This document shows, piece after piece, positions 28,337-64,000 of a DNA stretch of 64,000 nt. Under the pieces are notes generated by a model. It made no database searches, was not told the DNA's origin, and worked only from the letters and a program-made list of their open reading frames with translations. Location of the stretch: NCBI GenBank assembly GCA_002269645.1, contig NIVC01001549.1, forward strand, positions 62,001 to 126,000, written 5' to 3'. How positions within the stretch are numbered: the stretch's first letter is position 1; every line of letters begins with the position of its first letter. The stretch is from Macrostomum lignano. Taxonomy: Eukaryota. The position numbers and the translations under genes are program-made.

Positions 28337-30103
28337 CACCATTTTACCCTCGATTTTGAACAAGGAGAACTTCGAAACTGACAAACTCCTCTTCAATATT
28401 GACACTCTATGGTCGGGCACTCAAAATCTACAATCAATATTGACAGATCAAGCTTCAATTTTGACAAACTCTGGTTCAATTTTGACAATGCACGTTTAGT
28501 CAACTTCTCCTGGGAGAATTCGGTAACAAAGTAATCCAATGAAAGCCTGAACGGGGCTGAAGTGAGCTGTGCAAAATCAGCTTATTCTGACTTTGCTTTT
28601 TGGATCTACAAGTATTGATAAAAATTATTTTTCTCTATCCTTTACACACAGACTAAAATAGCCTGACTGGTTGGGCTGCAAAGTCTGATTCTATTTTGAC
28701 AGAGTTGCTTCAAAACTGACACTCTATGGTTTGTGTACCCAAAAAGTCCGCTTCATTTTTGACAACTCCGAATCAATATTGAACAGTTAACAATCGATTT
28801 TGACTAAGACATTTTTTGAAATAGATTTTGACAATTTTTACTAAGATTTCTCTCTTGAGGGGGGGTACTTGCTATTTGCGAGAGGGGGTACTGGCTGCAT
28901 GTATCTACGAGTACATGTATGGGAATATTTCTATTTAGGGATGCTTGCTAGAGTCCCTGCTCTCTCAAGGGACTCTAGCAAAAGGCCGGTCATTTAACAT
29001 CCCAAGACAGCAAGCATCCACCCAGATAGCAAGCATCCACCCAGATAGCAAGCATCCCCCAGATAGCAAGCATCCACCCAGATAGCAAGCATCCCCCAGA
29101 TAGCAAGCATCCACCCAGATAGCAAGAATTCACCCAGATAGCAAACATCCACCCAGATAGCAAGAATTCACCCAGATAGCAAGCATCCACCCAGATAGCA
29201 AGCATCCTGCAGATAGCAAGCATCCCTCAGATAGAAGCATCTACCCAGATAGCAAGCGTGCACCCAGATAGCAAGCATCCACCCAGATAGCAAGCGTGCA
29301 CCCAGATAGCAAACATCTTGCAGATAGCAAGCATCTTGCAGATAGCAAGCATCTTGCAGATAGCAAGCATCTTGCAGATAGCAAGCATCATCCAGGTAGC
29401 AAACATCCACCCAGATAGCAAGCATCCCCAGATAGCAAGCATCTTGCAGATAGCAAGCATCATCCAGGTAGCAAACATCCACCCAGATAGCAAGCATCCC
29501 TGGATAGAAATATTCCCATACATGTACTCGTAGATACATGCAGCCAGTACCCCCTCTCCCAAATAGCAAGTACCCCCCTCAAGAGAGAAATCTTAGTAAA
29601 AATTGTCAAAATCTATTTCAAAAAATGTCTTAGTCAAAATCGATTGTTAACTGTTCAATATTGATTCGGAGTTGTCAAAAATGAAGCGGACTTTTTGGGT
29701 ACACAAACCATAGAGTGTCAGTTTTGAAGCAACTCTGTCAAAATAGAATCGGACTTTGCAGCCCAACCAGTCAGGCGATTTTAGTCTGTGTGTGTAAAAT
29801 GATGGAGAAAAATAAATTTTATCAATACTTGTAGATCCCGAAAGCAAAGTCAGAATGAGCTGATTTTGCACAGCTCACTTCAGCCCCGTTCAGGCTTTCA
29901 TTGGATTACTTTGTTACCGAATTCTCCCAGGAGAAGTTGACTAAACGTGCATTGTCAAAATTGAACCAGAGTTTTTCAAAATTGAAGCTTGATCTGTCAA
30001 TATTGATTGTAGATTTTGAGTGCCCGACCATAGAGTGTCAATATTGAAGAGGAGTTTGTCAGTTTCGAAGTTCTCCTTGTTCAAAATCGAGGGTAAAATG
30101 GTG
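28337..30103. mobile_element. Foldback element with about 610-bp arms, CAC...GTG termini, TA TSD, minisatellite core
   Basis: Arms ~28337-28950 and ~29490-30103 are near-identical inverted copies: TA|CACCATTTTACCC ... GGGTAAAATGGTG|TA. Removal restores the THAP reading frame (AAT TAT AAC). Confidence 0.93.
28995..29500 (+). repeat. 18-19-bp minisatellite CCCAGATAGCAAGCATCC(A)
   Basis: Tandem array forming the spacer of the foldback element. Confidence 0.95.
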
Positions 30104-32237: not shown

Positions 32238-32463
32238 CTCTTTGGTCACTACGTACTAAACTACTCTTGAGTCTTGTCGATAGGCGATAGAGCTCGCACT
32301 TTTTGAAATCCACTCCCTGAATTTACGTGTTCACATCAAAAATGATTTGTCTGCCTCGTAACATCTATGAATGTACGTCTTAATAAAAGTATAGGCTTCA
32401 GAAACACGAATGTAAGCTACTACGTAAATAATAAACGCCGTTTAATTCACATTCTGTGGTTAG

Positions 32464-33030
32464 AATGTCCGAGGCTGCATTTAATGGTCCCGAGGCGAGC
32501 AAAGCGAAATACAATATGGAAGTCTTAGAAGACGTCAATTTTGACGCTGCTGTCGGAATTGAGTCGACAACTCGAGTTTCTGCTGAGTCCCTGGACGAAG
32601 CTGCTCTAGAAAAAAAGAATCAAAGAAAGCTTGCCTGTCTCTACCAGAGCGAAGGAAAAATGGGCAATGAAGTTTTTTAATCTATGGAAAGAGACGCGCG
32701 TCAACCGTCTATTGGCAGGCGAAGATTCGGGACTTGTGGTTCTCAAGCCAACCGAGGATCTGATGTTCTGCAGAACGTTTCTGTCTCGTCTGGATCATCA
32801 GCCTCGTCTGGTGAATCGTCTGAGCAAACTCGTGCTGTCTTGGCGTCATCTGGTGAATCGTCTGAGCAAGTCGGCGCCGATCGAGTCACAGACAGGCGTC
32901 GTCTAGGTGTCAAGTCTATTGTCGTTGAAGATGGGCGGCTGGAAATAACGTTAACCTACAGAAAGTGCATTTCTCGCCTCTTTCGCAGTCTCATCCTTTT
33001 CCCGAGGAACAACAACTTCTATGGTAATTT
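32464..33030 (+). mobile_element. Internally deleted Crypton-like remnant (copy C)
   Basis: KEKWAMKFFNLWKETR parallels WAVRIFDQW of the long copy. It is followed by an S/E-rich linker and KSIVVEDGRLEITL, which parallels the long copy C-terminus (RLNINGNTNTVEIVF). Confidence 0.5.
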
Positions 33031-33042
33031 ATCGGTTGTAGA

Positions 33043-33099
33043 AGGACTGAGAACCATTTCTCAGTCCCCAAACGAGGCCTGAGAAATAGTTCTCAGTCC
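33043..33099. repeat. Hairpin with 22-bp arms (21 of 22 match) and 13-nt spacer TCCCCAACGAGGC
   Basis: AGGACTGAGAACCATTTCTCAG and CTGAGAAATAGTTCTCAGTCCT. Confidence 0.92.
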
Positions 33100-33181
33100 T
33101 GCTATAAACAGTTGTATTTAACAAATGTAAACCAACAACAGGAAGTTCAAATAGTAAGATTTAGAAGCGTCTTGTAAGCAC

Positions 33182-34499
33182 TCACTCGAAAACGATTTCA
33201 ACGGTGTTGGTGTTACCATTGATGTTAAGCCTCATTTTCTTTGCAGGATTAGCAGTCACTACGTTACTTTGTTCCATAGCTTCAACAGAGCGTTCAGGCT
33301 CGGTGTCAATAGACAGACTTGATGACTGACCACCAGATTGAAGAGCATGCGATACTTTAACATGGTCTTGTACGTCAAACTGAATATAGAGCTCAATAGC
33401 TGTCGAAGAGTGTCCTGTAACACGAGCGATATCCTCTCTAGCAAAGCCAGCACGGTGTAGAGTACTTGCGCAAGTCTTGCGTAGAGACTGATTAGTGTAC
33501 CTTTCAGTCACTCCAGTTAGGGGAGCCGTTAATTCACGAACAATACCGTCCAAGCTGTGCCGGCCGACGGGTGCGTTTTGGTACCACCTGCCTTGCTGGA
33601 TGCTGGCATCGCTACGCATCCAAGCCAGGAACAAATTCTGAACCGTACAGTTTTCCGATCTTTTGTCCACATACAGCTTGTAGATGCAGGGTAGACATCT
33701 ATCATGATCAGCAGTATGAGATGCTTTAACGGTTTTCAATGGAACAAAACGTCGCTTTATGCCAGCGTTGTTGGTCTTCGTGGCTCTGTTCTCACAGTAA
33801 ACTAGAAGTTCTTGACCGTCTTCATGCTGCAACTGGATCTCACAGCTATATCTCAGACCATGCAGCTCCGTGCCTCCACGCAAAGCGAACTGCTTGCCAA
33901 GGTAGAACACAAGCGTAAACAGCAGTAATTTCGGCGACGTTGTTGCAAGACGTCCTTTCTGCCACAACTCCTCCTCCAGAGTTGCGGGAATTGGGCTAGA
34001 CGCATTTGTCCCCGGAACTAGGCCCTCTCTAGTAGCTTCTTTCATGGCAGCATCCAATGCCATTCTTGCATCCCTGCACGCAGCGTCCTTCCAGAGATTC
34101 AGTTCTTTCTTGAGCGTGTACTGCAGATAGTGTTGCATCATGGAAAATATGTCCCTAAGGGTCGTAGCATTGTATTTAGTGCCATCGACTTTTCGCACCT
34201 CGAGAATGAACATCTTTAATAGATAGTTCCAATCGCAAGCGTTCCATTCATGACGCTCCTTCAACACGAGAAGGCCAGTTGTATCACCATGTAGAATTCG
34301 ATTGTGTCGCTGCTCAAACCACTGGTCAAAAATTCTTACAGCCCATAGTTCGCGTATTTGGTGGGATAGCAGCGTCCAGCTTCCCTTGTATTTCGTCAGT
34401 CGAGAGCGTAGCGAATCGATCACTACCAGCAGCAGGATTCGTTGCAGCGGATTCTTTACTTTCAAAATATCGTAGCACTAGATCTAAGTCGTCTTCCAT
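33182..34499 (-). mobile_element. Crypton tyrosine-recombinase gene (DUF3504-type, copy B), near full length with one frameshift at ~34350
   Basis: QFALRGGTELHGL, TKTNNAGIKRR, CLPCIYKLY, WYQNAPVG, TNQSLRKTCAS, ARVTGHSS..ELY (R / x-x-x-R / H / Y). The natural start MEDDLD...RFATLSTDEIQGKLDAAIPPNTR at 34499 is out of frame with LWAVRIFDQW. Confidence 0.88.
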
Positions 34500-35045
34500 G
34501 GTTCTATTATATATGCAAATGGATGGACTGCTCAGTGCTCCATCTAGGTAGACGATTTATAACACTTTAGCCAGTCAGTCACATAGCTTGTGCCATAGAC
34601 TAACTGTACTGGATATTGATGCGTATTTTTCTTTCAGTAAATTAAATATTTTCTCCTCCTTTTTCATATAAGCTCCTAGTTTTTGTCAAATAATCTCTCC
34701 AAAAATTACCATAGACAACACATTCTCGGCTCAGAATAGTACAAATTTTTAACGATTAAATAAGCAATCGTATTTTATATGCATGTAATATAAATTACAT
34801 GCACAAATTATAATTGGAATTACACACTTTAAACTCGATACATTTGGGCATATCTGTATATGTAATAGCTAATAGTCAACAATGAACAAATCATTTCAGT
34901 TGGTGTATATTCTCCTTAAATATTTAATAGTTAGGAAACCCTTTCATTAGTAACATTCATTAGTCTTATTCAGAATAGTAGCAAGTTCTGACGGCACAAT
35001 TCAGTAGGTACTCATAAACTCAGAGCTTTGCTCATGCCATGCACA

Positions 35046-38000
35046 TCAATTGGTTCCGGTGCGCACCAGGTGTCTGGCCAGCAGCGGATACTCATCTCGC
35101 GTCAACAGCAGATCAATCTGGAACAGGTGGCTGACATCGTTGGCCAGGAAGTAGCCCAGAAATTTTCTCTTGCTGTCGCGGTCCGATTTCGGTATTTGAG
35201 ACAGGCTCAGCGCCGCTGGAGGCTTGATCAGCACGTCGGCGAAGGTGTCAGCTTGGCGGGTATGAACAAGGTGGTTTGGATTGCCAAAGTCTCTGCTTTA
35301 TCTAATTAGTAATAATGAATCATAACTGATTAAATACACCTGCCCTAATGGGCAAATGTGCAACCGACAGCTCAGCTGAAGGCTGCGTACGGCTGTTCAG
35401 TCCAAGGACTGGGGGGTGGGGTCGCCACACACTCAATTACCCCAGCTAATGCTGGCACTTATTTTACAGGTGAACTAAAGCAATGCAGAGTTAAGCGTCG
35501 TGCTCAAGGACACGAATTGTTCCGGGTTGAGTCGAGAATTGAACCCCCGGCCTTTCAGTCGGGAAACCGACGCTCTAAACCACTAGGCTGCAACACCTAT
35601 TATATGTACATGTAATGACTTATTTGTCTACATTTACTATCACATTTACAAGCTCCTTAACTCACCAAAGAGTGGCAGATCAGTGTCATTCTCGGAGCTA
35701 TGGGAATGCACCAGCTTCAGGAATGTGATCAAATAGACGAACACGTTTGCATTGATCTCGGGAAGGCAGTTGTAAATCTGGAGGAAATTCATTGATATCC
35801 TAAACTGTGCAATGTGTACATTCATTAAATACATGTCTTAGTTAGTAATTTAGCAGATCAATGCCACATTCACTCGCAGCTAATGAGGAGGCAAGGAGTC
35901 ATGCCCATTCCATTCTACCTACCCGTGAGCACGTACACACAGCTAGACGGATGCATACAGTATTCAGGCAACAGGGTCGGTGTGCAGCATGTACACTTGC
36001 TGCGCCTTGGAAGTTGAACTAATGGTGCGAATCGAACACACGAAATCAAACTTCGGGGGTTACTTAACTGATCCGAGAGTGATTAAATATACAAATCAGT
36101 TTTGGCTTTTACTATGGGCGACCAAAAGTGAACATCGATCACGCACCTCAAGTGAGTTCTTGAAACTTTTTGACGCGTCCATAATAGTGGAGTAAAGCTG
36201 TGACGGAAACAGACTGTCGGGCAGGCAGTCGAAGAACAGCACAATCGCTTCCAGTATTGAGTAGGCGCTCACGCTCGAGATGCGACTCTCGGCATTCCAC
36301 GACTCGACATTGTCCAACAGCCAGCGAATCTCTTGCAGATCTCGATGATAGCCGCCGCGTCTGAACAGGTCCGGCTTCTTTAAACAGCTCCTGCGCGCCG
36401 TTTCAACCAGTATTTTGAGCTCTTTGGGGATTAGGAAACGATGCATCGGGGATGTTTGAGCAGTTCTCGACGGGAGTGCGTAGAATCGGTACTTGGCGCT
36501 CAGAGCGTGGCTTGGCGAGAGGCGAAAGCTGTTGCCGCATCCGGCACCGTCGTCCATGATGCCTCCAATGGCCGGCTGACGCTGGTCGGTGGCCTTCATC
36601 GGAGCATTGTTGACAGGATTTTGTGCCTGCCGCTGTTGCTGCTGCGGTACCTGCTGATTTTCCTGCTGCTGTTTGTCTTGCTGCTGCTGCTGACTTGATG
36701 GCTGAGCTTGTTGCTGAACCGATTGGCCTTGATGCTTGTTCGGCGACTGTTGATGCACCTGCTGTTGCTGCTGCTGTTGCAGCAATTGTTGCAGGGTGTC
36801 GGCCTGAGCAAATCTGCCCACTGGTTGGGCCAGCTGCACCAGCTCGTCCAGCGGCATGCCGTAGCAACTACGTCGATAGGCAATTCGAGGCTTAACAGTG
36901 TAATCGCCGCCCGTCATCACGTGAATGACGAGATGCTGCGTCAAGCAGGATGGATCGCGCAATACCTGCACATTGACTGTCTGCTTGAGCTTGATCAGCT
37001 GCACCCCGCCAGGAGGTATGATTCCATTTTGCGGCTGAATACGCATTCCGGGCGGTCCGTAGCGCATCGTGTCGTAGCAGGGGACGAAGCACCACTCGGC
37101 CGGCAGCATTCCGGGGTTTCGGAGCACAACAACGCCGTAGGCTTTCTCTAGGAAACTAACGGAACGATCAAAGTCAACCACTTGGTTGTCAATCACAACT
37201 CGAGGCATGTAGACGTCGCGAAGCATTACGGTTTCAAGGAGGACCTTCTCTGCTTCGGTGTCGAAGCAGATGTTGTTGCGGCCGCTGCGCTGTAATGCGT
37301 TTCGGATGCACAGGTGTCAGTTTGGTTGATATACTAATGACTAGAGAGGGCTTATTGAGGAGTAAAACCTACTTTAGAAACGTTGTATCCAAGGGTTTGT
37401 ACATGTACAAGTGATTAGAGCTTCGGACTCGCGACTGAAAGGTCCGGGGTTCGATTCTCGTCCCTCTCGGAACAAGTTGTGTCCCTGAGCAAGACACCCA
37501 TTTAAAATTGGTGCCAGTACTAGCTCGTGTGTTTGGCGAACCCGCCCCCAGTCCCTGGACTGAACAGCCGTACGCAACCTTCATATGCACCGCGCAATAG
37601 CTGCAGCTGAGCTGTCGAATGCACATCTGCCCATTAGCAATGTAGCATGTGCACAAACATGTGTTGCATTAATTCATATGTCTGAGGCATCAAATTACCA
37701 AGATATTACTGAGGGTAGTAAAGCTAAAATCCTACTGTAACCATTAAACTGTACGTAAGTCACCAAGATCAAGCCCAGCGTTCTCAGCCAATCAACAACT
37801 CACCACTATGGTGAACGCGGAAGTAAGCGACAAGTACTTCTGGGTGCAACTGTGCCTCGCGTATCTGGTCTCAAGTTTCGGATAGGGACTGTTATCAACA
37901 GAGTCAACGCGTACAAAAGCTTTAGCATTGCGTACAAATTTCGATGAATGATTTATGGCGTCCATGTTAGTGAGTTCGCGCGGCGTTTTCAGTTTCACTT

Positions 38001-39890
38001 CCATGAACCGTTTGTCCGACGGCATGTCGTTCCGATCGGTCATGAGGCCTCGCTGCATCGTGGACTGGATAGAATGAATTAATCAGGGTAAGTACGGTGA
38101 ATATAGACTGCTATTTTTTATGGCTTTGAGATGTAGCACATGCACATGTAAAAATCACATTTGCAACGGTAAGCAAGTAAGCTTTTATCATTTAATCAGG
38201 CAGACAATCTGAATTTGAACTTCAATCTGACACCTGAGAAGCACTCCATAATCACATTGAAAAGAACGACACATAAAAATTCATAAATTTTTGAAGGCGT
38301 CATTAAATAGCGAGAGATACTTTTCGCAAACAAACACAAACTTCGATAGTCTGCTAAAATCAGTTCGATTCAGCATAGACAAATCCCCTGAAAGGACACA
38401 GTTTTCACCCTTTTCTCTGACCTTTAATGATGTTTAGATGCAAATCTTTGCGGAAAAAATCGTGTTGAAATTATTGTCTGCTTAGCACGTTAAAGAGCTA
38501 CACAAAACTACACTTCAATACACAACTATAGAGATTAAAATTGCAGTTCAGTCCATGTAAGCCCATTACTTTTATGTAGCCAAGTAACTTACGACTAGAT
38601 CCTCCATTGTCTTAGCGTAGATGTTAGACCGATTAAAGTCCTTAGCAAAAGTCTCATTAAACGCGTCCAGCGGATCGGCAATTTTCGATTGCGGTACTCG
38701 AATCTGCGACTGCGAGCGACCTACAGAGCTAGTCTTGGCCACGTTGAAGCGACCGATGGAACTGTCGGCAAAGTCCTGATTGTCACTTGCTGCCTGAGTA
38801 CCAGAGAAATCAGTGTCGTAGCTTCGCTGTCTCTGCAGCATGTAGGAGGAGTGCTCGTCCGAGAACTGGCTCCGCTGACGGACGCTGCCACCGATGCCCG
38901 TGGCCGCCCGTTCACGTTCGACAATCTCTAGCAGGGTTGCCGTGACTGGGAACTCGCCGAACGCGAATATTATGCTGCGGGTAAATTGGCCAGTTAGTGA
39001 ACTGACTCTGAATAGGAGAGTGACTGACAGGGAGACTGACAGGGAGACTGACAGGGAGACTGACTGACAGCGAGCCTGATTGACAGGGAGACTGACTGAT
39101 AGGGAGACTGATTGAGTTTAGTAACTCACTGTTGATAGCTATTCTTCTTGCTAAACAAGGTTTGGTTGTGCAACCCATTGCTGGACACCAGCTCCAAGTA
39201 CTCGATATCGTCAGACCACACGGCCGAGTCGGCACCCTCCATGATCATCAGGAAGGTGAGCACGAGTTTCTGAGTTGAGCAGCGCAGTGCAAGCATGTCG
39301 TGACTAAGATAGCTCTGCCTACCACCCTTGATGTACACAAAAGCGTCCTTCTTCGTGATCAGAGTGAACAGCAGAATGGCGCTATTGCCGCAGACGAACT
39401 CGGCCAATTGACAATAAATTGTAGAAGACGACTCGCCATTGTTTATCTCGGCCAGAGCAACTTTCTTAATCTCGTCCAATTTAGCGCTGAGCCTGGAAGT
39501 TCGCACGCCTACGGCGATTAAATCGAACAGATCGTCCATAGAAAACTTCTCAGTGATGGGATCTTCTGGTTCCGTTTGTTTGGCGGCGTCAGATGTCTGG
39601 TCGAGCTTTTGCACTACTCGCCTGACAGCCATGGTCTCTAGCGGCGATAGAATGTCCAACCTGCTGATGGAGTCGTCCTTGCACTTGCAGTAAGACAGCT
39701 TCACGTTGAGCTGCATCTGCAGTTCAATCTCTTGAAATCTGTTGGCCAGTCGTCGCTGAAAGATGGACATAAAGCGCGTGTCCAGTGGCGGGTGGGTGGA
39801 CTCGAACGGGCTGGTGTTCAGCTGCAGCCGATCAAACAGCTCCCGGATGGGGTGGTTCATTGCGTACTGCTTTCTGGATTCGTCCGCCAT
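35046..39890 (-). CDS. OCRL/INPP5B-like protein (divergent PH-like N-terminus, ASH, RhoGAP) without a 5-phosphatase domain; 6 exons (39890-39130, 38974-38593, 38064-37804, 37289-36147, 35777-35666, 35251-35046), about 954 aa
   Basis: Strong Kozak GCCATGG, all phases match (2,0,0,0,1). ASH-like YMPRVVIDNQVVDF..LRNPGMLPAEWCF..NGIIPPG..LVIHV..RSCYGMPLDEL; RhoGAP IPKELKILV..PDLFRRGG..AYSILEAIVLFFDCLPDSL..LPEINANVFVYLITFL..FADVLIKPP, all paralleling OCRL/INPP5B. Confidence 0.85.
35364..35588 (-). mobile_element. tRNA-derived SINE in intron 5 of the OCRL-like gene
   Basis: Minus strand GCCTAGTGGTTTAGAGCG (A box) ... GGTTCAATTC (B box), GTGTCCTTGAGCA central block, tail shared with the copy at 37410. 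Confidence 0.8.
37410..37617 (+). mobile_element. tRNA-derived SINE (same family, opposite strand) in intron 3
   Basis: GTGATTAGAGC..GGTTCGATTC..GTGTCCCTGAGCAAGACAC..CAGTCCCTGGACTGAACAGCCGTACGCA. Confidence 0.8.
39012..39112 (+). repeat. Short 12-bp-type tandem repeat (GACTGACAGGGA) in intron 1 of the OCRL-like gene
   Basis: Direct observation. Confidence 0.8.
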
Positions 39891-40639: not shown

Positions 40640-41045
40640 CATCCCAAGACAGCAAGCATCCCCCAGATAGCAAGCATCCTCTAGATTGCAAGCAACCCTT
40701 GGATAGCAAGCATCCCCCAGATAGCAAGCATCCCCCAGATAGCAAGCATCCCCTAGATAGCAACCATCCCCCAGATAGCAAGCATCCTCCAGATAGCAAG
40801 CATCCCCCAGATAGCAAGCATCCCCCAGATAGCAAGCATCCCCCAGATAGCAAGCATCCCCCAGATAGCAAGCATCCCCCAGATAGCAAGCATCCCTCAG
40901 ATAGCAAGCATCCCCCAGATAGCAAGCATCCCCCAGATAGCAAGCATCCCCCAGATAGCAAGCATCCCTCAGATAGCAAGCATCCCCCAGATAGCAAGCA
41001 TCCCTCAGATAGCAAGCATCCCCCAGATAGCAAGCATCCACCAGA
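40640..41045 (+). repeat. 18-bp minisatellite CCCCCAGATAGCAAGCAT, about 22 copies (same family as 28995-29500)
   Basis: Direct observation. Confidence 0.96.
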
Positions 41046-41124: not shown

Positions 41125-43265
41125 TGTAAATTTTATGTTTGACATGGTGGCTCTTTTATGTTCTACATGGCAACTCTTTTATGTTTGAAACAATGGCTTT
41201 TTAATGTCTGACATGGTGGCTCTTTAATGTTCGACAAAGTGGCTATTTAATGTTTGACAAGGTGGCTCTTTAATGTTCGACATGGTGGCTCTTTTGTTTT
41301 ACATGGTGGCTCTTTAATGTTCGAAATGGTGGCTCTTTAATGTTTGACATAAAGACACATATATGTTTGATATGGTGGGTCTTAAATGTTTGACATGGTG
41401 GCTCTTTAATGTTCTAAATGGTGGCTCTTTAATGTTTGACATGGTAGCTCTTTTATGTTCGACAGGGTGGCTCTTTTAGGTTTGACATGGTGGCTCTTTT
41501 AGGTTTGACATGGTGGCTCTTAAATGTTCGACATGGTGGCTCTTTTATGTTTAACATGGTGGCTCTTTAATGTTTGACATGGTGGCTCTTTAATGTTCTA
41601 AATGGTGGCTCTTTAATGTTTTACATGGTGGCTCTTAAATGTTTGACATGGTAGCTCTTTTATGTTGACATGGTGGTTCTTTTAGGTTTGACATGGTGGC
41701 TGGTTAATGTTCGGTATAATGGCCCTTTAATGTTCAACGTAGTGGCTCTTTAATATTCTACATGGTGGCTCTTTTATGTTTAACATGGTGGCTCTTTAAT
41801 GTTCGAAATGGTGGCTCTTTTGTTTTACATGGTGGCTCTTTAATGTTTGGCATGGTGGCTCTTTTTTGTTCGAAATGGTGGCTCTTTTTTGTTCTACATG
41901 GTAACTCTTTTATATTTGATACGGTGGCTTTTTTAATGTCTGACATGTTGGCTCTTTTATGTTTGACATGGTGGCTCTTTAATGTTCGACAAAGTGGCTC
42001 CTAAATGTTTGACATAGTGGCTCTTTAATGTTCAAAATGGTGGCTCCTAAATGTTTGAAATAGTGGCTCTTTAATGTTCAAAATGGTGGCTCTTTTATGT
42101 TCGACATGGTGGCTCTTTAATGTTCGAAATGGTGGCTCTTTAATGTTTAAAATAGTGGCTCTTTTATGTTCGACATGGTGGCTCTTTAATGTTCGAAATG
42201 GTGGCTCTTTAATGTTCAAAATAGTGGCTCTTTTATGTTCGACATGGTGGCTCTTTAATGTTCGAAATGGTGGCTCTTTAATGTACGACATAATGGCTTT
42301 TGAATGTTTGACATGGTGGCTCTTTAATGTTTGACATGGTAGCTCTGTTATGTTCGACATGGTGGCTCTTCTAGGTTTGACACGAAGGCTCTTAAATGCT
42401 TAACATGTTGGCTCTTTTATGTTTAACATGGTAGCTCTTTAATATTTTACATGGCGGCTACTTTATGTTCGACATGGTGGCTCTTTAATATTCTTCATGT
42501 TATAGCTCTTTCATGTTTGACAAGGTGGCTCTTTAATGTTCGAAATAGTGGCTCTTTAATGTTCGAAATGGTGGCTCTTTAATGTTTGACATAAAGTCAC
42601 ATATATGTTTGACATGGTGGCTCTTTATGTTTGACATGTTGGCTCTTTTATGATTGACATGTTGGCTCTTTTATGTTTGACATGGTGGCTCTTTAATGTT
42701 TGACATGGTGGCTCTTTTTTGTTCTACATGGTAGCTAACTCTTTTTATATTTGATACGGTGGCTTTTTAATGTCTGACATGTTGGCTCTTTTATGTTTGA
42801 CATGGTGGCTCTTTAATGTTCGAAAAAGTGGCTCCTAAATGTTTGACATAGTGGCTCTTTGATGTTCGAAATAGTGGCTCTTTTATGGTCGACATGGTGG
42901 CTCTTTAATGTTCGAAATGGTGGCTCTTTAATGTTCGAAATGGTGGCTGTTTAATGTTCGAAATGGTGGCTCTTTTATGTTTGACATAAAGTCACTTATA
43001 TGTTTTACATGGTGGCTCTTAAATGTTTGACATGGTGGCTCTTTATGTTTGACATAAAGTCACTTATATAGTTGACATGGTGGCTCTTTTATATTCTACA
43101 TTTTGGCTCTTTTAGGTTTGACATGGTGGCTCTTTAATGTTTGACATGGTGGCTCTTTATGTTTGACATGTTGGCTCTTTTATGTTTGACATGGTGGCTC
43201 TTTTATGTTCGATATGTTGGCTCTTTAATGTTCGACATGGTGGCTCTTCTATGTTTGACATTGCG
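41125..43265 (+). repeat. 22-bp satellite TCTTTAATGTTTGACATGGTGGC-like, roughly 95 diverged copies
   Basis: Direct observation; lies inside Helitron H1. Confidence 0.95.
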
Positions 43266-43327
43266 CTTCTTTTATGTTTAGCAGTTTTGTGTTTTTAAGG
43301 TGTTTTAATAAAAAAAAATCTTTTTTG

Positions 43328-45169: not shown

Positions 45170-47270
45170 CAATTCAGCCATCATCCATGAGCCTTGTCAT
45201 CTTAGCAATTCCCCCCAGTAAGCCTTGAAATCTCAGCAATTCTCCAAGTAAGCCTTGACAAGAATTGCTAAGAATTGCTAAGAATACTTAGCTAACAATT
45301 GCTAATACTTGCTAAGAATTGCTGAGAAGCCTCGAGATCTCAGCAATTCCCCCAGTAAGCATTGACATCTCAGCGATTCTCCCAGTAAGCCTTGAAATCT
45401 TAGCAATTCCCCCAGAAAGAATTCACATCTTAGCAATTGCCGCAGTAAGCCTTGAAATCGCTGCAATCCCCCCAGTAAGCCTTAACATCTCAGCAATTCC
45501 CCCAATAAGCCTTGACATCTGAGGAATTCCCCAGTAAGCCTTGAAATCTAAGCATTTCCCCAGTAAGCCTTGAAATCTCAGCATTCCCCCAGAAAGCCTT
45601 CACATTTTAGCAATTCCCAGTAAGACTTGACATCTTAGCAATTCCCAGTAAGACTTGACATCTCAGCAGTTCCCCCATTAAGCATCGACATCGCAGCAAT
45701 TAAACTCGAGCCTTGACATCTACGCAGTTCTCTCAGCTGAGTAAGCCTTGACATCCCAACAACCCAACTCCGCTCCCCCAAGAATTCAGCAATCCCCTTA
45801 TGAGCCTTGATATCTCTGCAATTTCTTCATAAGCCTTGTCAACTCAGTGATTCCATTCATGAGCTTTGATATCTTAGCAACTCCCATCTTAGCAAGTCTT
45901 TAGTTGATGGTTAACAGAGTGGTTATTCTATGATTGAACCAAAACTGACCCTAAGCCCCTAACCCTAACCCATAAGTGAGTCTTGGCATGTTAGCAATCT
46001 CCCCCGTGAGCCTTGAGCCTGAGCATTTAAGTAACTTCCTCATAAGCTTTGAAATATAAATTTCACCGAAAGCCTTGAACTGTCAGCAATTCCCTAAGAG
46101 CCAAAGCATATAACTAATTCGCCCCTTTAATCTTTGAAATTCCTTGATGAATCATTTATGATTGACACGACGATCGCTCTATAATTAAACTCAAATCCTA
46201 ACCCTTAACCTGCAGCCGAGTCACAGCATTTCAGCAACTCCCCCTCTCAGCCCAAGAATTTCAGCAATTCCCCAATGAGCTTTTGAAATCTTAGCAATTT
46301 TCCCATGAGCATGAAACTTTAGTGACTAACCTTTTGATATCTTGGCACTTTCACATGAGTCTTATGGTTGAAAACTAACCCTGCCAAGTCACAGCATTTC
46401 AGCAATTCCCACCGTAAACCACAGCATTTCGACAAATACCCAATGAACCTTGACATTTCGTGAATTTCAGCTATTCGCTTTAGGAGCCTTTGAAATCTCA
46501 GCCATTCCCCTGTGAACCTTAGCATCTCAGCAATACCCAAGAGTCACAGCCTACAGCATTACAGGGATCCCCCGTGAGCTTTGAAATCTCAGCTATTCCC
46601 CAATGAGCCTTGATATCTCAGCAACTCCTATTTGAGCCACAAAATTTCGGCAATATGAGCAGGTACTGCAATCACAACAATCCCCCTGAGCATTGAGCCA
46701 CATTATAATTCGGATATCCCCCCACGAGCCTTTACAACTTAGCAATTCCCCAATGAGTATTTAATGTTAGACAGGCCTATTCATTTATATGGTTTACGTC
46801 TTACTCTTACCCTAACAATGTCGGCAATTCCCTCAAGAGCCACAGCATTCCAGAAATTATTTCCATGAGCCTTGACAGCAAATAATTTTAATGAGCCTTG
46901 ATACCTCAGAAATTTCTCAAATGGAATTTGAAATCAAAGCAATTCTGCCCAGAATCACATCAGTATAGAAATTTCCCTCTGAGACTTGACAAGACATCTC
47001 AGAATTTCTCTCATGGGCCTTGATCTGGCCCATGGCCCAGTAAGCCTTGAAATCTCAATAATTCCCCAGTAAGCCTTGACATCTCAGAAATTCCCTCATT
47101 AAGATCGACATCGCAGCAATTGAACTTAAGCTTTGAAATCAAAGCAATTCTCCCCAGAATCACATCATTATAGCAATTACCGCTGAGCCTTGAGATCTTA
47201 GAAATTCTCCCATGAGTCTTGATATCACAGAAATTTTCCATACCAGCCTTGACATCTTAGCAATTCACAT
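45170..47270 (+). repeat. Degenerate ~31-33-bp minisatellite (CTTAGCAATTCCCCCAGTAAGCCTTGAAAT), cargo of each 5.17-kb unit
   Basis: Homogeneous at the left end and progressively decayed rightwards; repeated at ~50340, ~55510 and ~59860. Confidence 0.9.
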
Positions 47271-48812
47271 TGAGTATTTTATTCTCGACAGACCGCTTCT
47301 TTTATGGTTGACATGATGATTCTTTTGTCGCTTTTTCTTGTGTTGAGTTTTCTTCTGTTTAAAGTAGCATTTATTAAAAACTTACAGTGGTTTACCATCA
47401 CTTTAGCAATGGTTTACCATCACTTTAGCGATGGTTCACCAGCAATTTAGCAATGGTTCACCAGCAGTTTAGCAATGGTTCACCGGCACTGTTCCGCAAA
47501 ATCTGGGAGCAGATGGCTACTGATCTCCATATGCTTCTCAATAATCGAAACCATTTGAAATGTTTGCAACTTGCAGTTTAAAATTGATTTGCAATTCTCT
47601 TGCATATTTATTAATTCATTGTACGTCAGATTAGCACTGCTCACCCAGATTAGACCCTTTGCAAATTAGCACTTACAGCAGATTAGCACTGCTCTAGAAG
47701 ACTAACGCAGCCCCAGCAAAAGTATCTTTAAATTTAAGTGTTTACCATCTCCATGAATCTGCATAGGATGCAATCATTATTGTCACAGGTCACAAAGATA
47801 AATTCGCTGCTTCAATGCAGGCTCGAACTGCTGACATCAAAGCATTCTGTTTGCTTCTGCTTGATACTGCCTGCCTACTGCGGCGATTGTGCCTATTGAC
47901 ATGTGGTCGAAATAATCTAGTTTAGCAACTTCAGCCGTTTGAAGTTAACCCCCGGAAATCGGCATTTATCCCCACAACAACCTGAAATTATCCCTTCATC
48001 TAATCCCGCAAAAAGACTGCAGTTATTTCTTAGCAGCCGGCATTTATCATCCACTTTGCATTTTAAAACTTTTATTAAAATTAAGAATGCATACCCTCAG
48101 CGGCATAGAATTGTCCCCTTAGCCAAAAATATTTCACTTAGCAGCCGCAGAAATCCCCTAAACAACTTGTACTTAATCTTCCACAGTAAATATCCACTCA
48201 AAACTCAATAGTTAGTTATAAGCCTCAGAAGTCTGCCATTATCCTCTAATTAGTCCGCAGTTTTCCCTCTCAGCAGTCTGCAGCTATACGCTCATACGTC
48301 TGGAGGAACTACCTCAGCAGTTTGCAGTTGTTTCCCCTTTGCAATCTGCAATGATCCCTTCGACAGTCTGCAGTTCCCCTCAGCAGTCTGCAGTCATTTC
48401 ATTTTCAGTCTACAACTGTACCATTAACGATTTTCATTCATTCTCTCAGCAGCCTGCAGTTCTCCTCTCGGCCGGCTCCTCAGTCTCCTCTGCAAACTGC
48501 AATTTGCTCAGAATTTTACGGCTCACTAATCAATTTTCGATACATATCGGCAGTCTTGAAAAGCTCAGCATTTAGCAGCATTGTCTGCAGTTTAGTAATT
48601 TCGTACTTTTATGGAGCTAGACAATACCCATTGATGGGATCAGTTATACTCGAAGCAGTTTTTACAAATCAAATTTGATTAGTGGCTTGTGCCGAGTAGC
48701 AAAAAATGAATTGCTAATTAATAAAAAAATGTTTCAATTGAAATTAAATAAAAATGTTTCAATTAGTCCAGGCACAAGCTATAAATTATTGAATTATTTG
48801 AATTTTTATTAT

Positions 48813-48895
48813 CCGCCGGGGAGGCAGACTCGAACCTTGGACCTTACGTCTAGCCTAAACCTAGTCCTAAGTGCCTACACTGCGGCTACTCCGCC
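48813..48895 (-). pseudogene. tRNA-like (Pol III A/B box) relic, repeated in every unit (also 53984-54066, 59163-59245, 63517-63599)
   Basis: GGCGGAGTAGCCGCAGTGTAGGC (A-box/D-arm-like) ... AAGGTTCGAGTC (B box), followed by an A-rich tail; T and acceptor stems pair poorly. Confidence 0.5.
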
Positions 48896-49828
48896 TATTG
48901 ATGGGAGGACAACAAAATCAGCCATATATGCTTCAGAACTGCAGTTAAAATACATAGCAGTGATAGGCTGCTCAGTGTGTAGGCGTGCAGGCGGAGCCAA
49001 TGCACAGTTGATTGAGTGAAATCTATAAATAGCAATTTTCTATGGAGTCCGCCAGTCAGAGCCAGGGTCAGAATGTACACACGCAGCCACTGAGCATTTT
49101 CTCTCCTTGCACACTGCAACCAGTATTGAAGCTTACACAGTGGAGAGAGAAAAGTTATGGCGCAATCATAATTGGAATTGGAATTCAGCCAGTCCAGTCA
49201 AGAATTCAACCTAGTTTGCCCTACCATTAAAAGCATTGGGAAAACTCGTTTTTCGAATATTTAATACCTTTAGCATTAAAGCCGATTAAAGAAATTTCAA
49301 CTGTCTTCTTTCCAGATAATTACAAATCTTTTCGTAAAAACGCGATTAAAATTGGTCAATGGTTCTATCTCTAGAACGTTACACGAATACTAACACAAAT
49401 TCTCTTCGAGTGAAAGTCACACGAAGCAGCTATGACATAATCAAATACTCAGGCAGTCAGCATCAGTCTCAATTAAAGTTAGCAATATGGTTACGCAATT
49501 TCTGTCTTTCAACTTGGCACAGTGTTTTCAACTTGTTGTGATGCAATCTTTATCAAAATCAGAATTCAGTCAGTCGGTTTTTTCTCTAGCATTCTTACAG
49601 CGCATTTCAAGTCGAAAGAGCTGCTTGACCTTTGCAAAAAAGCATGTTTTTCGAATATTTAATCCCTTTAGCATTGAAGCAGATTAAAGAAATTTTAACC
49701 GTCTTCTTTCCAGACAATTTTAAATCTTTTGACGAAAACGCGATCAAAATTGGTGAAGAATTGCAATCTGTAGAGCGTTATGGACATTCAAGCATACGAA
49801 CAAACCTTAGAGATTTAGTATATTTAGA

Positions 49829-52800
49829 CTAGCCATTTAGCCCCCGCTGGGGAGCCCTAAAATGACACCAATTGGTTTTTATTTTGACGCAAGAGTAACC
49901 TTACTATAATTATCCAAAATGTTGATTTCCATTAATCAAAAATTACCTTTTCTCATTTTGGCAAAAATAAATTGCCATGAATCAGAACTTTCATCAGCCA
50001 AAAAAGGTTCCTTCATCAGCCCAAAACCCTTTCTCAATCAGCAAATAGTGCTTATCCTTTCAAGCACAAACTCTTAGTGCATATCGTCGCTGGCCGGGGC
50101 ATATTCTTATCCGCAGCAAATATGCAAATCATTGACGGCCTTAGACCCTCTCTTTTAATTAGCCTAAATCAAAGAATGAAACCTTAATAAATGCGCTGGT
50201 ATTTCCTATTAGCAGAAATCAGCATCACTTGTGTGTACAATTTCATTATCTGAATTACATGAGGTACTTCAGCTGTACTACCTGACTATCTGACAATCGC
50301 CCAACAACCTAACACCCCCAACAATTCAGCCATCGTCCATGAGCCTTGTCATCTTAGCAATTCCCCCAGTAAGCCTTGTCATCTTAGCAATTCCCCCAGT
50401 AAGCCTTGAAATCTCAGCAATTCCCCAAGTAAGCCTTGACAAGAATTGCTAAGAATTGCTAAGAATACTTAGCTAACAATTGCTAATACTTGCTAAGAAT
50501 TGCTGAGAAGCCTCGAGATCTCAGCAATTCCCCCAGTAAGCATTGACATCTCAGCAATTCTCCCAGTAAGCCTTGAAATCTTAGCAATTCCCCCAGAAAG
50601 AATTCACATCTTAGCAATTGCCGCAGTAAGCCTTGAAATCGCTGCAATTCCCCCAGTAAGCCTTAACATCTCAGCAATTCCCCCAATAAGCCTTGACATC
50701 TGAGGAATTCCCCCAGTAAGCCTTAAATCTAAGCATTTCCCCAGTAAGCCTTGAAATCTCAGCATTCCCCAGAAAGCCTTCACATTTTAGCAATTCCCAG
50801 TAAGACTTGACATCTTAGCAATTCCCAGTAAGACTTGACATCTCAGCAGTTCCCCCATTAAGCATCGACATCGCAGCAATTAAACTCGAGCCTTGACATC
50901 TACGCAGTTCTCTCAGCTGAGTAAGCCTTGACATCCCAACAACCCAACTCCGCTCCCCAAGAATTCAGCAATCCCCTTATGAGCCTTGATATCTCTGCAA
51001 TTTCTTCATAAGCCTTGTCAACTCAGCGATTCCATTCATGAGCTTTGATATCTTAGCAACTCCCATCTTAGCAAGTCTTTAGTTATGGTTAACAGAGTGG
51101 TTATTCTATGATTGAACCAAAACTGACCCTAAGCCCCTAACCCTAACCCATAAGTGAGTCTTGGCATGTTAGCAATCTCCCCCGTGAGCCTTGAGCCTGA
51201 GCATTTAAGTAACTTCCTCATAAGCTTTGAAATATAAATTTCACCGAAAGCCTTGAACTGTCAGCAATTCCCTAAGAGCCAAAGCATATAACTAATTCGC
51301 CCCTTTAATCTTTGAAATTCCTTGATGAATCATTTATGATTGACACGACGATCGCTCTATAATTAAACTCAAATCCTAACCCTTAACCTGCAGCCGAGTC
51401 ACAGCATTTCAGCAACTCCCCCTCTCAGCCCAAGAATTTCAGCAATTCCCCAATGAGCTTTTGAAATCTTAGCAATTTTCCCATGAGCATGAAACTTTAG
51501 CGACTAACCTTTTGATATCTTGGCACTTTCACATGAGTCTTATGGTTGAAAACTAACCCTGCCAAGTCACAGCATTTCAGCAATTCCCACCGTAAACCAC
51601 AGCATTTCGACAAATACCCAATGAACCTTGACATTTCGTGAATTTCAGCTATTCGCTTTAGGAGCCTTTGAAATCTCAGTCATTCCCCGTGAACCTTAGC
51701 ATCTCAGCAATACCCAAGAGTCACAGCCTACAGCATTACAGGGATCCCCCGTGAGCTTTGAAATCTCAGCTATTCCCCAATGAGCCTTGATATCTCAGCA
51801 ACTCCTATTTGAGCCACAAAATTTCGGCAATATGAGCAGGTACTGCAATCACAACAATCCCCCTGAGCATTGAGCCACATTATAATTCGGATATCCCCCA
51901 CGAGCCTTTACAACTTAGCAATTCCCCAATGAGTATTTAATGTTAGACAGGCCTATTCATTTATATGGTTTACGTCTTACTCTTACCCTAACAATGTCGG
52001 CAATTCCCTCAAGAGCCACAGCATTCCAGAAATTATTTCCATGAGCCTTGACAGCAAATAATTTTAATGAGCCTTGATACCTCAGAAATTTCTCAAATGG
52101 AATTTGAAATCAAAGCAATTCTGCCCAGAATCACATCAGTATAGAAATTTCCCTCTGAGACTTGACAAGACATCTCAGAATTTCTCTCATGGGCCTTGAT
52201 CTGGCCCATGGCCCAGTAAGCCTTGAAATCTCAATAATTCCCCAGTAAGCCTTGACATCTCAGAAATTCCCTCATTAAGATCGACATCGCAGCAATTGAA
52301 CTTAAGCTTTGAAATCAAAGCAATTCTCCCCAGAATCACATCATTATAGCAATTACCGCTGAGCCTTGAGATCTTAGAAATTCTCCCATGAGTCTTGATA
52401 TCACAGAAATTTTCCATACCAGCCTTGACATCTTAGCAATTCACATTGAGTATTTTATTCTCGACAGACCGCTTCTTTTATGGTTGACATGATGATTCTT
52501 TTGTCGCTTTTTCTTGTGTTGAGTTTTCTTCTGTTTAAAGTAGCATTTATTAAAAACTTACAGTGGTTTACCATCACTTTAGCAATGGTTTACCATCACT
52601 TTAGCGATGGTTCACCAGCAATTTAGCAATGGTTCACCAGCAGTTTAGCAATGGTTCACCGGCACTGTTCCGCAAAATCTGGGAGCAGATGGCTACTGAT
52701 CTCCATATGCTTCTCAATAATCGAAACCATTTGAAATGTTTGCAACTTGCAGTTTAAAATTGATTTGCAATTCTCTTGCATATTTATTAATTCATTGTAC

Positions 52801-54999
52801 GTCAGATTAGCACTGCTCACCCAGATTAGACCCTTTGCAAATTAGCACTTACAGCAGATTAGCACTGCTCTAGAAGACTAACGCAGCCCCAGCAAAAGTA
52901 TCTTTAAATTTAAGTGTTTACCATCTCCATGAATCTGCATAGGATGCAATCATTATTGTCACAGGTCACAAAGATAAATTCGCTGCTTCAATGCAGGCTC
53001 GAACTGCTGACATCAAAGCATTCTGTTTGCTTCTGCTTGATACTGCCTGCCTACTGCGGCTATTGTGCCTATTGACATGTGGTCGAAATAATCTAGTTTA
53101 GCAACTTCAGCCGTTTGAAGTTAACCCCCGGAAATCGGCATTTATCCCCACAACAACCTGAAATTATCCCTTCATCTAATCCGCAAAAAGACTGCAGTTA
53201 TTTCTTAGCAGCCGGCATTTATCATCCACTTTGCATTTTAAAACTTTTATTAAAATTAAGAATGCATACCCTCAGCGGCATAGAATTGTCCCCTTAGCCA
53301 AAAATATTTCACTTAGCAGCCGCAGAAATCCCCTAAACAACTTGTACTTAATCTTCCACAGTAAATATCCACTCAAAACTCAATAGTTAGTTATAAGCCT
53401 CAGAAGTCTGCCATTATCCTCTAATTAGTCCGCAGTTTTCCCTCTCAGCAGTCTGCAGCTATACGCTCATACGTCTGGAGGAACTACCTCAGCAGTTTGC
53501 AGTTGTTTCCCCTTTGCAATCTGCAATGATCCCTTCGACAGTCTGCAGTTCCCCTCAGCAGTCTGCAGTCATTTCATTTTCAGTCTACAACTGTACCATT
53601 AACGATTTTCATTCTCTCAGCAGCCTGCAGTTCTCCTCTCGGCCGGCTCCTCAGTCTCCTCTGCAAACTGCAATTTGCTCAGAATTTTACGGCTCACTAA
53701 TCAATTTTCGATACATATCGGCAGTCTTGAAAAGCTCAGCATTTAGCAGCATTGTCTGCAGTTTAGTAATTTCGTACTTTTATGGAGCTAGACAATACCC
53801 ATTGATGGGATCAGTTATACTCGAAGCAGTTTTTACAAATCAAATTTGATTAGTGGCTAGTGCCGAGTAGCAAAAAATGAATTGCTAATTAATAAAAAAA
53901 TGTTTTAATTGAAATTAAATAAAAATGTTTCAATTAGTCCAGGCACAAGCTATAAATTATTGAATTATTTGAATTTTTATTATCCTCCGGGGAGGCAGAC
54001 TCGAACCTTGGACCTTACGTCTAGCCTAAACCTAGTCCTAAGTGCCTACACTGCGGCTACTCCGCCTATTGATGGGAGGACAACAAAATCAGCCATATAT
54101 GCTTCAGAACTGCAGTTAAAATACATAGCAGTGATAGGCTGCTCAGTGTGTAGGCGTGCAGGCGGAGCCAATGCACAGTTGATTGAGTGAAATCTATAAA
54201 TAGCAATTTTCTATGGAGTCCGCCAGTCAGAGCCAGGGTCAGAATGTACACACGCAGCCACTGAGCATTTTCTCTCCTTGCACACTGCAACCAGTATTGA
54301 AGCTTACACAGTGGAGAGAGAAAAGTTATGGCGCAATCATAATTGGAATTGGAATTCAGCCAGTCCAGTCAAGAATTCAACCTAGTTTGCCCTACCATTA
54401 AAAGCATTGGGAAAACTCGTTTTTCGAATATTTAATACCTTTAGCATTAAAGCCGATTAAAGAAATTTCAACTGTCTTCTTTCCAGATAATTACAAATCT
54501 TTTCGTAAAAACGCGATTAAAATTGGTCAATGGTTCTATCTCTAGAACGTTACACGAATACTAACACAAATTCTCTTCGAGTGAAAGTCACACGAAGCAG
54601 CTATGACATAATCAAATACTCAGGCAGTCAGCATCAGTCTCAATTAAAGTTAGCAATATGGTTACGCAATTTCTGTCTTTCAACTTGGCACAGTGTTTTC
54701 AACTTGTTGTGATGCAATCTTTATCAAAATCAGAATTCAGTCAGTCGGTTTTTTCTCTAGCATTCTTACAGCGCATTTCAAGTCGAAAGAGCTGCTTGAC
54801 CTTTGCAAAAAAGCAAGTTTTTCGAATATTTAATCCCTTTAGCATTGAAGCAGATTAAAGAAATTTTAACCGTCTTCTTTCCAGACAATTTTAAATCTTT
54901 TGACGAAAACGTGATCAAAATTGGTGAAGAATTGCAATCTGTAGAGCGTTATGGACATTCAAGCATACGAACAAACCTTAGAGATTTAGTATATTTAGA
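49829..54999 (-). mobile_element. Helitron H5, second tandem unit (5171 bp)
   Basis: Near-identical to H4, same termini, exact CTAG|TC junctions. Confidence 0.87.
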
Positions 55000-63900: not shown

Positions 63901-64000
63901 GTCAAGAATTCAACCTAGTTTGCCCTACCATTAAAAGCATTGGGAAAACTCGTTTTTCGAATATTTAATACCTTTAGCATTAAAGCCGATTAAAGAAATT
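55000..64000 (-). mobile_element. Helitron units H6+H7 fused by an ~835-bp deletion at 59628-59632; runs off the window end
   Basis: Marker ORFs recur at 45319, 50500, 55675 and 60022 (spacings 5181, 5175, 4347). Junction TAGCATTA-tat-GCAGCAAAT lacks the terminal sequences. Confidence 0.85.

Follow-up and report, generated by a model that had tools for sequence, protein, structure and literature searches.

What becomes of a protein of the OCRL/INPP5B family when its lipid phosphatase is missing, and does an arginine at the arginine-finger position of its RhoGAP-like domain make it an active GTPase-activating protein (GAP)? Both questions are raised by a gene of the flatworm Macrostomum lignano that lies within a 64,000-nt stretch of contig NIVC01001549.1 (assembly GCA_002269645.1, positions 62,001 to 126,000 of the forward strand), hereafter the window, from whose first letter all positions are counted. 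Our analysis leans towards a constrained, non-catalytic adaptor derived from OCRL, in which the C-terminal ASH and RhoGAP-like domains were kept and neither enzyme would be at work.

Structure of the gene and its two copies

The OCRL-like gene occupies the minus strand from 39890 to 35046. As read from the window it has six exons, all of its introns are GT-AG, and its coding sequence of 2865 nt specifies 954 amino acids (aa) and a TGA stop. The exons are as follows.

39130..39890, minus strand: exon 1, aa 1-254, beginning with the ATG at 39890 and ending with the first two bases of codon 254; orphan N-terminal region
38593..38974, minus strand: exon 2, aa 254-381; orphan, Ser/Gln/Arg-rich, probably disordered
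37804..38064, minus strand: exon 3, aa 382-468; orphan; weak resemblance, not significant, to the final part of a 5-phosphatase domain
36147..37289, minus strand: exon 4, aa 469-849; linker helix, ASH, Q-rich linker and the first half of the RhoGAP-like domain
35666..35777, minus strand: exon 5, aa 850-887, ending with the first base of codon 887; carries L885 (position of Asn391 in p50RhoGAP)
35046..35251, minus strand: exon 6, aa 887-954 and the TGA; carries D888 and D892 (positions of Val394 and Pro398 in p50RhoGAP)

An in-frame TAA is found at 39920-39918, 30 nt upstream of the ATG. The 954-aa translation is identical to GenBank PAA66575.1 (BOX15_Mlig025224g2, "hypothetical protein", contig NIVC01001549.1); an earlier note on this stretch had described a clean six-exon open reading frame (ORF) of about 954 aa, and both the GT-AG borders and this identity bear it out. 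Because the Mlig_3_7 annotation was made from RNA-seq transcript assemblies (PMC5730564), the match gives the exon chain indirect transcript support. We found no literature on PAA66575.1 or BOX15_Mlig025224g2, and the protein had already been deposited as hypothetical. UniRef places A0A1I8GNS8 (213 aa, M. lignano, 'Reverse transcriptase domain-containing protein') in a 90%-identity cluster with the 954-aa protein; that name probably goes back to an erroneous label in an older annotation.

A second genomic copy, PAA94475.1 (g1, contig NIVC01000010.1), differs from the window protein (g2) by 3 aa, and the two copies are ~99% identical across the gene. Their exons are separated by 11 substitutions (8 synonymous, 3 non-synonymous) and no indels, and their introns by 11 substitutions, one 75-bp indel and one 1-bp indel. 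With 648 synonymous and 2214 non-synonymous sites, the ratio of non-synonymous to synonymous substitution rates (dN/dS) was ~0.11, and the synonymous excess was significant (binomial p = 6e-4). In the orphan N-terminus taken alone, the synonymous to non-synonymous count was 6:3 (p = 0.006). Because the excess is seen in the whole and in the N-terminus, both halves are under purifying selection as protein. We conclude that the gene is real and under constraint.

The C-terminal half is an OCRL-type tandem

Pfam assigned aa 501-600 to the OCRL-like_ASH domain (PF21310, E 1e-7) and aa 756-898 to RhoGAP (PF00620, E 2e-15), and the best sequence match in the PDB, obtained with phmmer, was the human OCRL ASH-RhoGAP structure (3qis/2qv2, E 1e-24). 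When the protein was aligned by hhalign to a 44-sequence OCRL profile, homology became reliable from ~aa 475-482. These residues, close behind the start of exon 4, are the linker helix, which in OCRL comes after the phosphatase. An AlphaFold (AF2) model of aa 470-954, built from an input alignment with eight OCRL homologues, had predicted local distance difference test (pLDDT) values of 82-94 in the ASH and RhoGAP-like domains, and its Gln-rich linker was mostly disordered. The top Foldseek match of this model was the entire OCRL tandem (3qis_A, E 1e-20, template modelling (TM) score 0.86), followed by OCRL ASH domains and assorted RhoGAP domains. The segments of this half are:

36813..37271, minus strand: pre-ASH helix and OCRL-like ASH domain, aa ~475-627
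36438..36803, minus strand: Gln-rich low-complexity linker between ASH and RhoGAP, aa 631-752, 30% Q, mostly predicted disordered
35121..36437, minus strand: RhoGAP-like domain, aa 753-930, across exons 4, 5 and 6 with introns 4 and 5 included

The ASH-RhoGAP tandem of the OCRL/INPP5B family is thus present by Pfam, by phmmer and in the AF2 model, as the earlier note had proposed from the parallel between these regions and OCRL/INPP5B. Together, these results support the view that the protein is derived from OCRL/INPP5B, with ASH and RhoGAP-like domains.

No recognisable phosphatase in the N-terminal half

Neither the GDLNYR nor the P.W.DRIL motif was found in the 954-aa protein. In aa 1-470 Pfam had no match of any kind at E up to 10, thus neither a 5-phosphatase (Exo_endo_phos) domain nor, in aa 1-283, a PH domain (INPP5B_PH, PF16776); PF16776 is present in arthropod relatives, and this N-terminal PH domain characterises the metazoan OCRL/INPP5B members. 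A PDB search of the orphan N-terminus returned nothing better than E 0.74. Furthermore, tblastn with OCRL homologues of at least 700 aa detected no phosphatase-like segment on either strand of the 64-kb window, where all matches outside the ASH/RhoGAP exons had E > 0.1. Hidden phosphatase exons were considered, and the same search gave no sign of them over the 64 kb. The introns flanking exon 3 measure 528 bp (intron 2) and 514 bp (intron 3), in agreement with the ~0.5 kb given before; of the SINE (short interspersed element) reported in one of them, the repeat itself is present in intron 3 and is plausibly a SINE.

For the homologue survey, 1.84 billion cluster representatives were scanned in full with HMMER. 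This returned 376 relatives, of which the best 150 were examined. All 150 aligned only to the ASH and/or RhoGAP region, so that among them there was no relative of aa 1-470. Each of those of at least 600 aa had at least one 5-phosphatase motif, and the motif-less ones were fragments of at most 500 aa whose first residues lie within ASH or RhoGAP or just ahead of them. Among the best 150 of the 376 relatives, the phosphatase-less ASH-RhoGAP architecture of the M. lignano protein is therefore unique. A word-index search with aa 1-468 was empty up to E 10 and missed even the protein itself, which the full-length query did find; we gave this search no weight. A single-sequence AlphaFold prediction of the full protein had a mean pLDDT of 35, with values <50 throughout the N-terminal region, and hence was uninformative there. 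In aa 281-400 the hydrophobic fraction was 0.24 and the composition disorder-like.

It is conceivable that the phosphatase decayed in place, such that aa ~140-470 would be a degenerate 5-phosphatase domain and the protein a diverged OCRL orthologue or duplicate with a dead core. The ~475 aa that precede the linker helix are comparable to the region before ASH in OCRLs, and a greedy global hhalign alignment produced weak, collinear motif echoes with roughly conserved spacing: ATGIGG..SVRQRSQF for GTGIMGkmGNKGgVaiRF, SDNQDFAD for RRNQDYnD, DPLDAF for GDLNYR, and RYARHS...LTSAFTIV for vYRSH..SDHKPVSalF. However, the local hhalign comparison with the 44-sequence profile reached only E 0.32, and the global and greedy scores were the same as those of shuffles. 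Extension by hmmsearch anchored on ASH gave z between -0.1 and 1.0 relative to 300 shuffles, and with a flatworm-only profile 35/100 shuffles scored as well as the real sequence. The disorder-like composition of aa 281-400 also argues against a decayed domain, and the residues of the catalytic motifs would all be replaced in any case. Because every test for a relic stayed at the level of shuffles, we do not claim the echoes, and we regard decay in place as unlikely, although it deserves a hearing. As judged by motifs, Pfam, the profile and shuffle tests and the 64-kb tblastn, the previously noted lack of a 5-phosphatase signature holds, and the phosphatase is absent as a recognisable entity in aa 1-470.

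A different account would make the gene a decaying OCRL duplicate, or a gene model that lacks its true 5' phosphatase exons. In its favour are extreme divergence (24-31% identity to every OCRL), the orphan N-terminus, the low-complexity insertion and the highly duplicated genome of M. lignano (PMC5730564). Against this, the 954-codon ORF is intact in both copies, which have the low dN/dS and indel-free exons given above; the splice sites are all canonical and the model is that of an RNA-seq-based annotation; the in-frame stop closes the frame 30 nt upstream of the ATG; and there is no phosphatase-like sequence in the 24 kb upstream within the window, most of which consists of tandem repeats. 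We consider this account very improbable.

The arginine finger and the other GAP determinants

The feature that suggested catalysis is a single codon:

36360..36362, minus strand: Arg778 codon AGA, first R of DLFRRGG, in the arginine-finger column; Arg779 follows at 36359-36357

In human OCRL the residue opposite Arg778 is Gln (DLFQTPG), in ARHGAP5 it is the catalytic Arg (LYRVSG), and in p50RhoGAP, for which the sequence used was identical to 1am4_A, it is Arg85/Arg282. Arg778 also fell in the finger column of a 150-sequence family alignment. The three alignments thus agree, and the arginine reported at this position (36362-36360) is confirmed.

In the family alignment the finger column was Q in 37 sequences, L in 29, S in 11, V in 10, R in 8, I in 8 and M in 7, and the Arg-bearing sequences included two trematode OCRLs and several protist OCRL-like proteins. 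When the trematode pair was used for a profile search, five further flatworm OCRLs were found, which made seven neodermatan sequences (4 trematodes, 3 cestodes: Calicophoron, Heterobilharzia, Paragonimus, Clonorchis, Sparganum, Hymenolepis and Mesocestoides). All seven have Arg at the finger (ELFRQ, ELFRR or DLFRQ) and all are phosphatase-bearing, with Pfam PF22669 in 7/7, PF03372 in most, and a GDxNYR-type motif. In the arthropod, vertebrate and priapulid representatives checked, the column is Q, E or T.

A RhoGAP domain is defined by the pair Arg282 and Lys319 of p50RhoGAP, and the inactivity of p85 has been ascribed to loss of Arg323, Asn391, Val394, Pro398 and conserved residues around the arginine finger (PMC8305018). 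In the M. lignano protein, K319 (Lys122) is replaced by V818, R323 by D822, N391 by L885, V394 by D888 and P398 by D892. Of what a competent RhoGAP needs, the arginine finger is therefore present, and the partner lysine and the four binding determinants are missing. Lys319, Arg323 and Asn391 are absent from the neodermatan OCRLs as well.

These data bear on the idea that, after loss of the phosphatase, the protein became an Arg778-dependent GAP for a Rho-family GTPase, an 'inverted enzymology'. The idea is consistent with the agreement of three independent alignments on the finger column, with a RhoGAP fold predicted at high confidence (TM 0.75-0.80 to the active GAP domains of Myo9b, DLC1 and MgcRacGAP), with the conservation of the Arg across neodermatan OCRLs and with purifying selection on the gene. 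However, the five residues that replace Lys319, Arg323, Asn391, Val394 and Pro398 (V, D, L, D and D) are dissimilar, and a like loss inactivates p85 (PMC8305018). Within the OCRL family the finger column varies widely, which suggests that it is under no catalytic constraint, and the Arg also occurs outside the phosphatase-less gene. Since the determinants beyond the Arg are all substituted, an active GAP is the less likely outcome; canonical GAP activity is unlikely on this evidence, and we would give an active RhoGAP little credence. The suggestion that the Arg marks an enzymatic inversion particular to this gene is not supported, because the residue is shared with all seven phosphatase-bearing neodermatan OCRLs and the other GAP determinants are substituted.

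A bolder proposal is that flatworms kept or re-acquired a functional arginine finger in OCRL's RhoGAP-like domain, which in vertebrates is a dead GAP, and that Macrostomum then uncoupled this domain from the lipid phosphatase. The outcome would be a non-canonical RhoGAP or effector trap that works on its own and is targeted by a new N-terminal region. Although we think this quite improbable, it would, if true, amount to a natural separation of OCRL scaffold function from OCRL enzymatic function. The Arg in all seven neodermatan OCRLs likewise makes it a testable possibility that the 'dead GAP' status of OCRL is not universal.

Partner-binding surfaces

In human OCRL, F668V abolishes Rab8A binding (PMC3392109) and W739A reduces binding of F&H-adaptor peptides (PMC6743453). 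In the alignment to 3qis, whose numbering was confirmed via these two residues, F668 corresponds to T599 (36899-36897) and W739 to K760 of the M. lignano protein. The Rab-binding ASH surface of the OCRL/INPP5B family and its F&H surface, the latter as judged by W739 alone, are thus not retained in the form known from OCRL. In the flatworm OCRLs examined, the F668 position still holds Phe and the W739 position an aromatic residue, and the flatworm OCRLs in the structure-prediction alignment keep the GGKDYF motif. The ASH-RhoGAP scaffold of the M. lignano protein has probably changed partners. For the endosomal or ciliary role raised in the earlier note we found nothing in support, and the contact residues for Rab8 (F668) and F&H (W739) are substituted.

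Origin of the gene

The M. lignano protein was 24-31% identical to every OCRL over 322 aligned ASH and RhoGAP columns. In a neighbour-joining (NJ) tree of these columns (200 bootstraps, with six of the seven neodermatan sequences retained) it was placed on a long basal branch next to the outgroups, and the neodermatan OCRLs formed a clade in 200/200 bootstraps. The basal placement is most likely long-branch attraction, and we claim no placement. Neither the flatworm-profile search, nor cluster look-ups for 20 representatives, nor the supplements of M. lignano papers yielded a canonical M. lignano OCRL. The gene may descend from a flatworm OCRL in which the Arg was already present.

A proposed non-catalytic adaptor derived from OCRL

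Taking these results together, we propose that this is a lineage-restricted M. lignano gene, present in two near-identical copies and descended from the OCRL/INPP5B family, of which only the C-terminal ASH and RhoGAP-like scaffold would have been kept. Where OCRL has its PH and inositol 5-phosphatase modules, this protein has a region of ~470 aa without detectable relatives, and a Gln-rich linker of ~120 aa separates its ASH from its RhoGAP-like domain. GAP activity is probably lacking, so that the product would be a pseudo-phosphatase-less pseudo-GAP. In this proposal the ASH-RhoGAP tandem would bind other proteins, perhaps a Rho/Rac-type or other small GTPase in its GTP-bound state, and the new N-terminus would bring in different partners or a different localisation. 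Both the adaptor role and the lack of GAP activity are inferred.

Several observations weigh against this proposal. The local context of Arg778 is good (LFRRGG, compared with IFRRSA in p50RhoGAP), the presence of Arg in 7/7 neodermatan OCRLs suggests that the residue may have a function, and the sequence would be compatible with a non-canonical GAP mechanism. Because both of the best-documented OCRL interaction residues are changed, 'adaptor' is no more than a default reading of the scaffold. Furthermore, the M. lignano protein joins the neodermatan OCRLs in only 2/200 bootstraps, and since the NJ tree does not place it with flatworm OCRLs, the grounds for descent from a flatworm OCRL are taxonomy and the shared Arg.

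Comparison with known systems places the protein beside, and apart from, several of them. Like OCRL/INPP5B (3qis, 2qv2, 3qbt), it has a linker helix, an ASH beta-sandwich and a RhoGAP-like domain in tandem, and like OCRL it is without Lys319 and Asn391 of p50RhoGAP. Unlike OCRL/INPP5B, it has neither PH nor 5-phosphatase, it has Arg for Gln at the finger, T599 and K760 at the partner-binding positions, the ~120-aa Gln-rich insert and 470 orphan aa. It resembles the neodermatan OCRLs, which belong to the same phylum, in the finger Arg and in the absence of Lys319, Arg323 and Asn391, whereas these retain the 5-phosphatase, F668 and an aromatic residue at W739, and the NJ tree separates them from it. 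Use of the RhoGAP fold as a non-catalytic interaction module is known from the BH domain of p85alpha/beta and from the pseudo-GAPs ARHGAP36, DEP1/2 and FAM13B. As in p85, Arg323, Asn391, Val394 and Pro398 are all substituted in the M. lignano protein; however, p85 has an SH3/SH2 context and no ASH, and the likeness is one of mode of inactivation and not of ancestry. Dd5P4, the Dictyostelium homologue of OCRL, shows that an architecture without the PH domain can still function, but unlike the M. lignano protein it has retained its 5-phosphatase together with a conserved surface for F&H binding (PMC6743453).

The core of OCRL, made up of the 5-phosphatase and ASH-RhoGAP, has been described as exceptionally conserved across eukaryotes (PMC6743453). 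Because this core is conserved and is kept in every long relative surveyed, a constrained gene with the scaffold only constitutes a natural experiment, and the gene represents a new variant of OCRL-family architecture. It bears on the role of the scaffold without lipid phosphatase activity, a matter of interest for those missense mutations of Lowe syndrome that fall in the ASH-RhoGAP region. The claim extends to a protein from one species only, whose N-terminus is uninterpretable and whose sequence speaks against canonical GAP activity. RNA interference by soaking is used in M. lignano. The animal is also amenable to transgenesis (PMC5730564), and the role of the scaffold can thus be addressed in vivo.

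Repeats and neighbourhood

Two introns of the OCRL-like gene contain related repeats:

37415..37637: SINE-like repeat copy, intron 3
35345..35578: diverged inverted copy of the intron 3 repeat, intron 5, ~66-70% identical

The two copies are ~230 bp long and in opposite orientation, and a 46-nt core is 85% complementary between them. No further copies were present in the window. A tRNA origin was considered and received no call by ARAGORN or Rfam; that the repeat is a SINE is plausible. Intron 1 holds a minisatellite of CAGTCTCCCTGT-like units at ~39010-39110, and the g1 array is 75 bp longer than that of the window copy.

About 0.6 kb downstream of the stop of the OCRL-like gene, an intronless ORF of 427 aa (33182-34465, minus strand) matched DUF3504 (E 3e-20) and QRICH1, with weak matches to Phage_integrase. 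It is without gene annotation in the public record and looks like a Crypton-like, tyrosine-recombinase-derived element. Because a stretch of ~2.36 kb around this ORF (~32424-34778) is absent from g1, the two copies differ here by an insertion.

Tandem repeats dominate the ~5 kb that precede the ATG. They include an 18-mer x22 at 40643-41045 and a 23-mer x93 at 41131-43279, and they give rise to spurious long ORFs in several reading frames. At 29005-29500 there is a related array of 19/37-mers. Further along, in the region 45300-64000, the same short tandem arrays turn up repeatedly, at 45327, 50508, 55683 and 60030 as well as at 47388, 52564, 57743 and 62091, a spacing that indicates a unit of ~5.2 kb (the last ~4.3 kb) in four tandem repeats. 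There is no annotated gene within 10 kb upstream of the window copy, and at the g1 locus an Asteroid/XPG-like gene lies 5.3 kb upstream.

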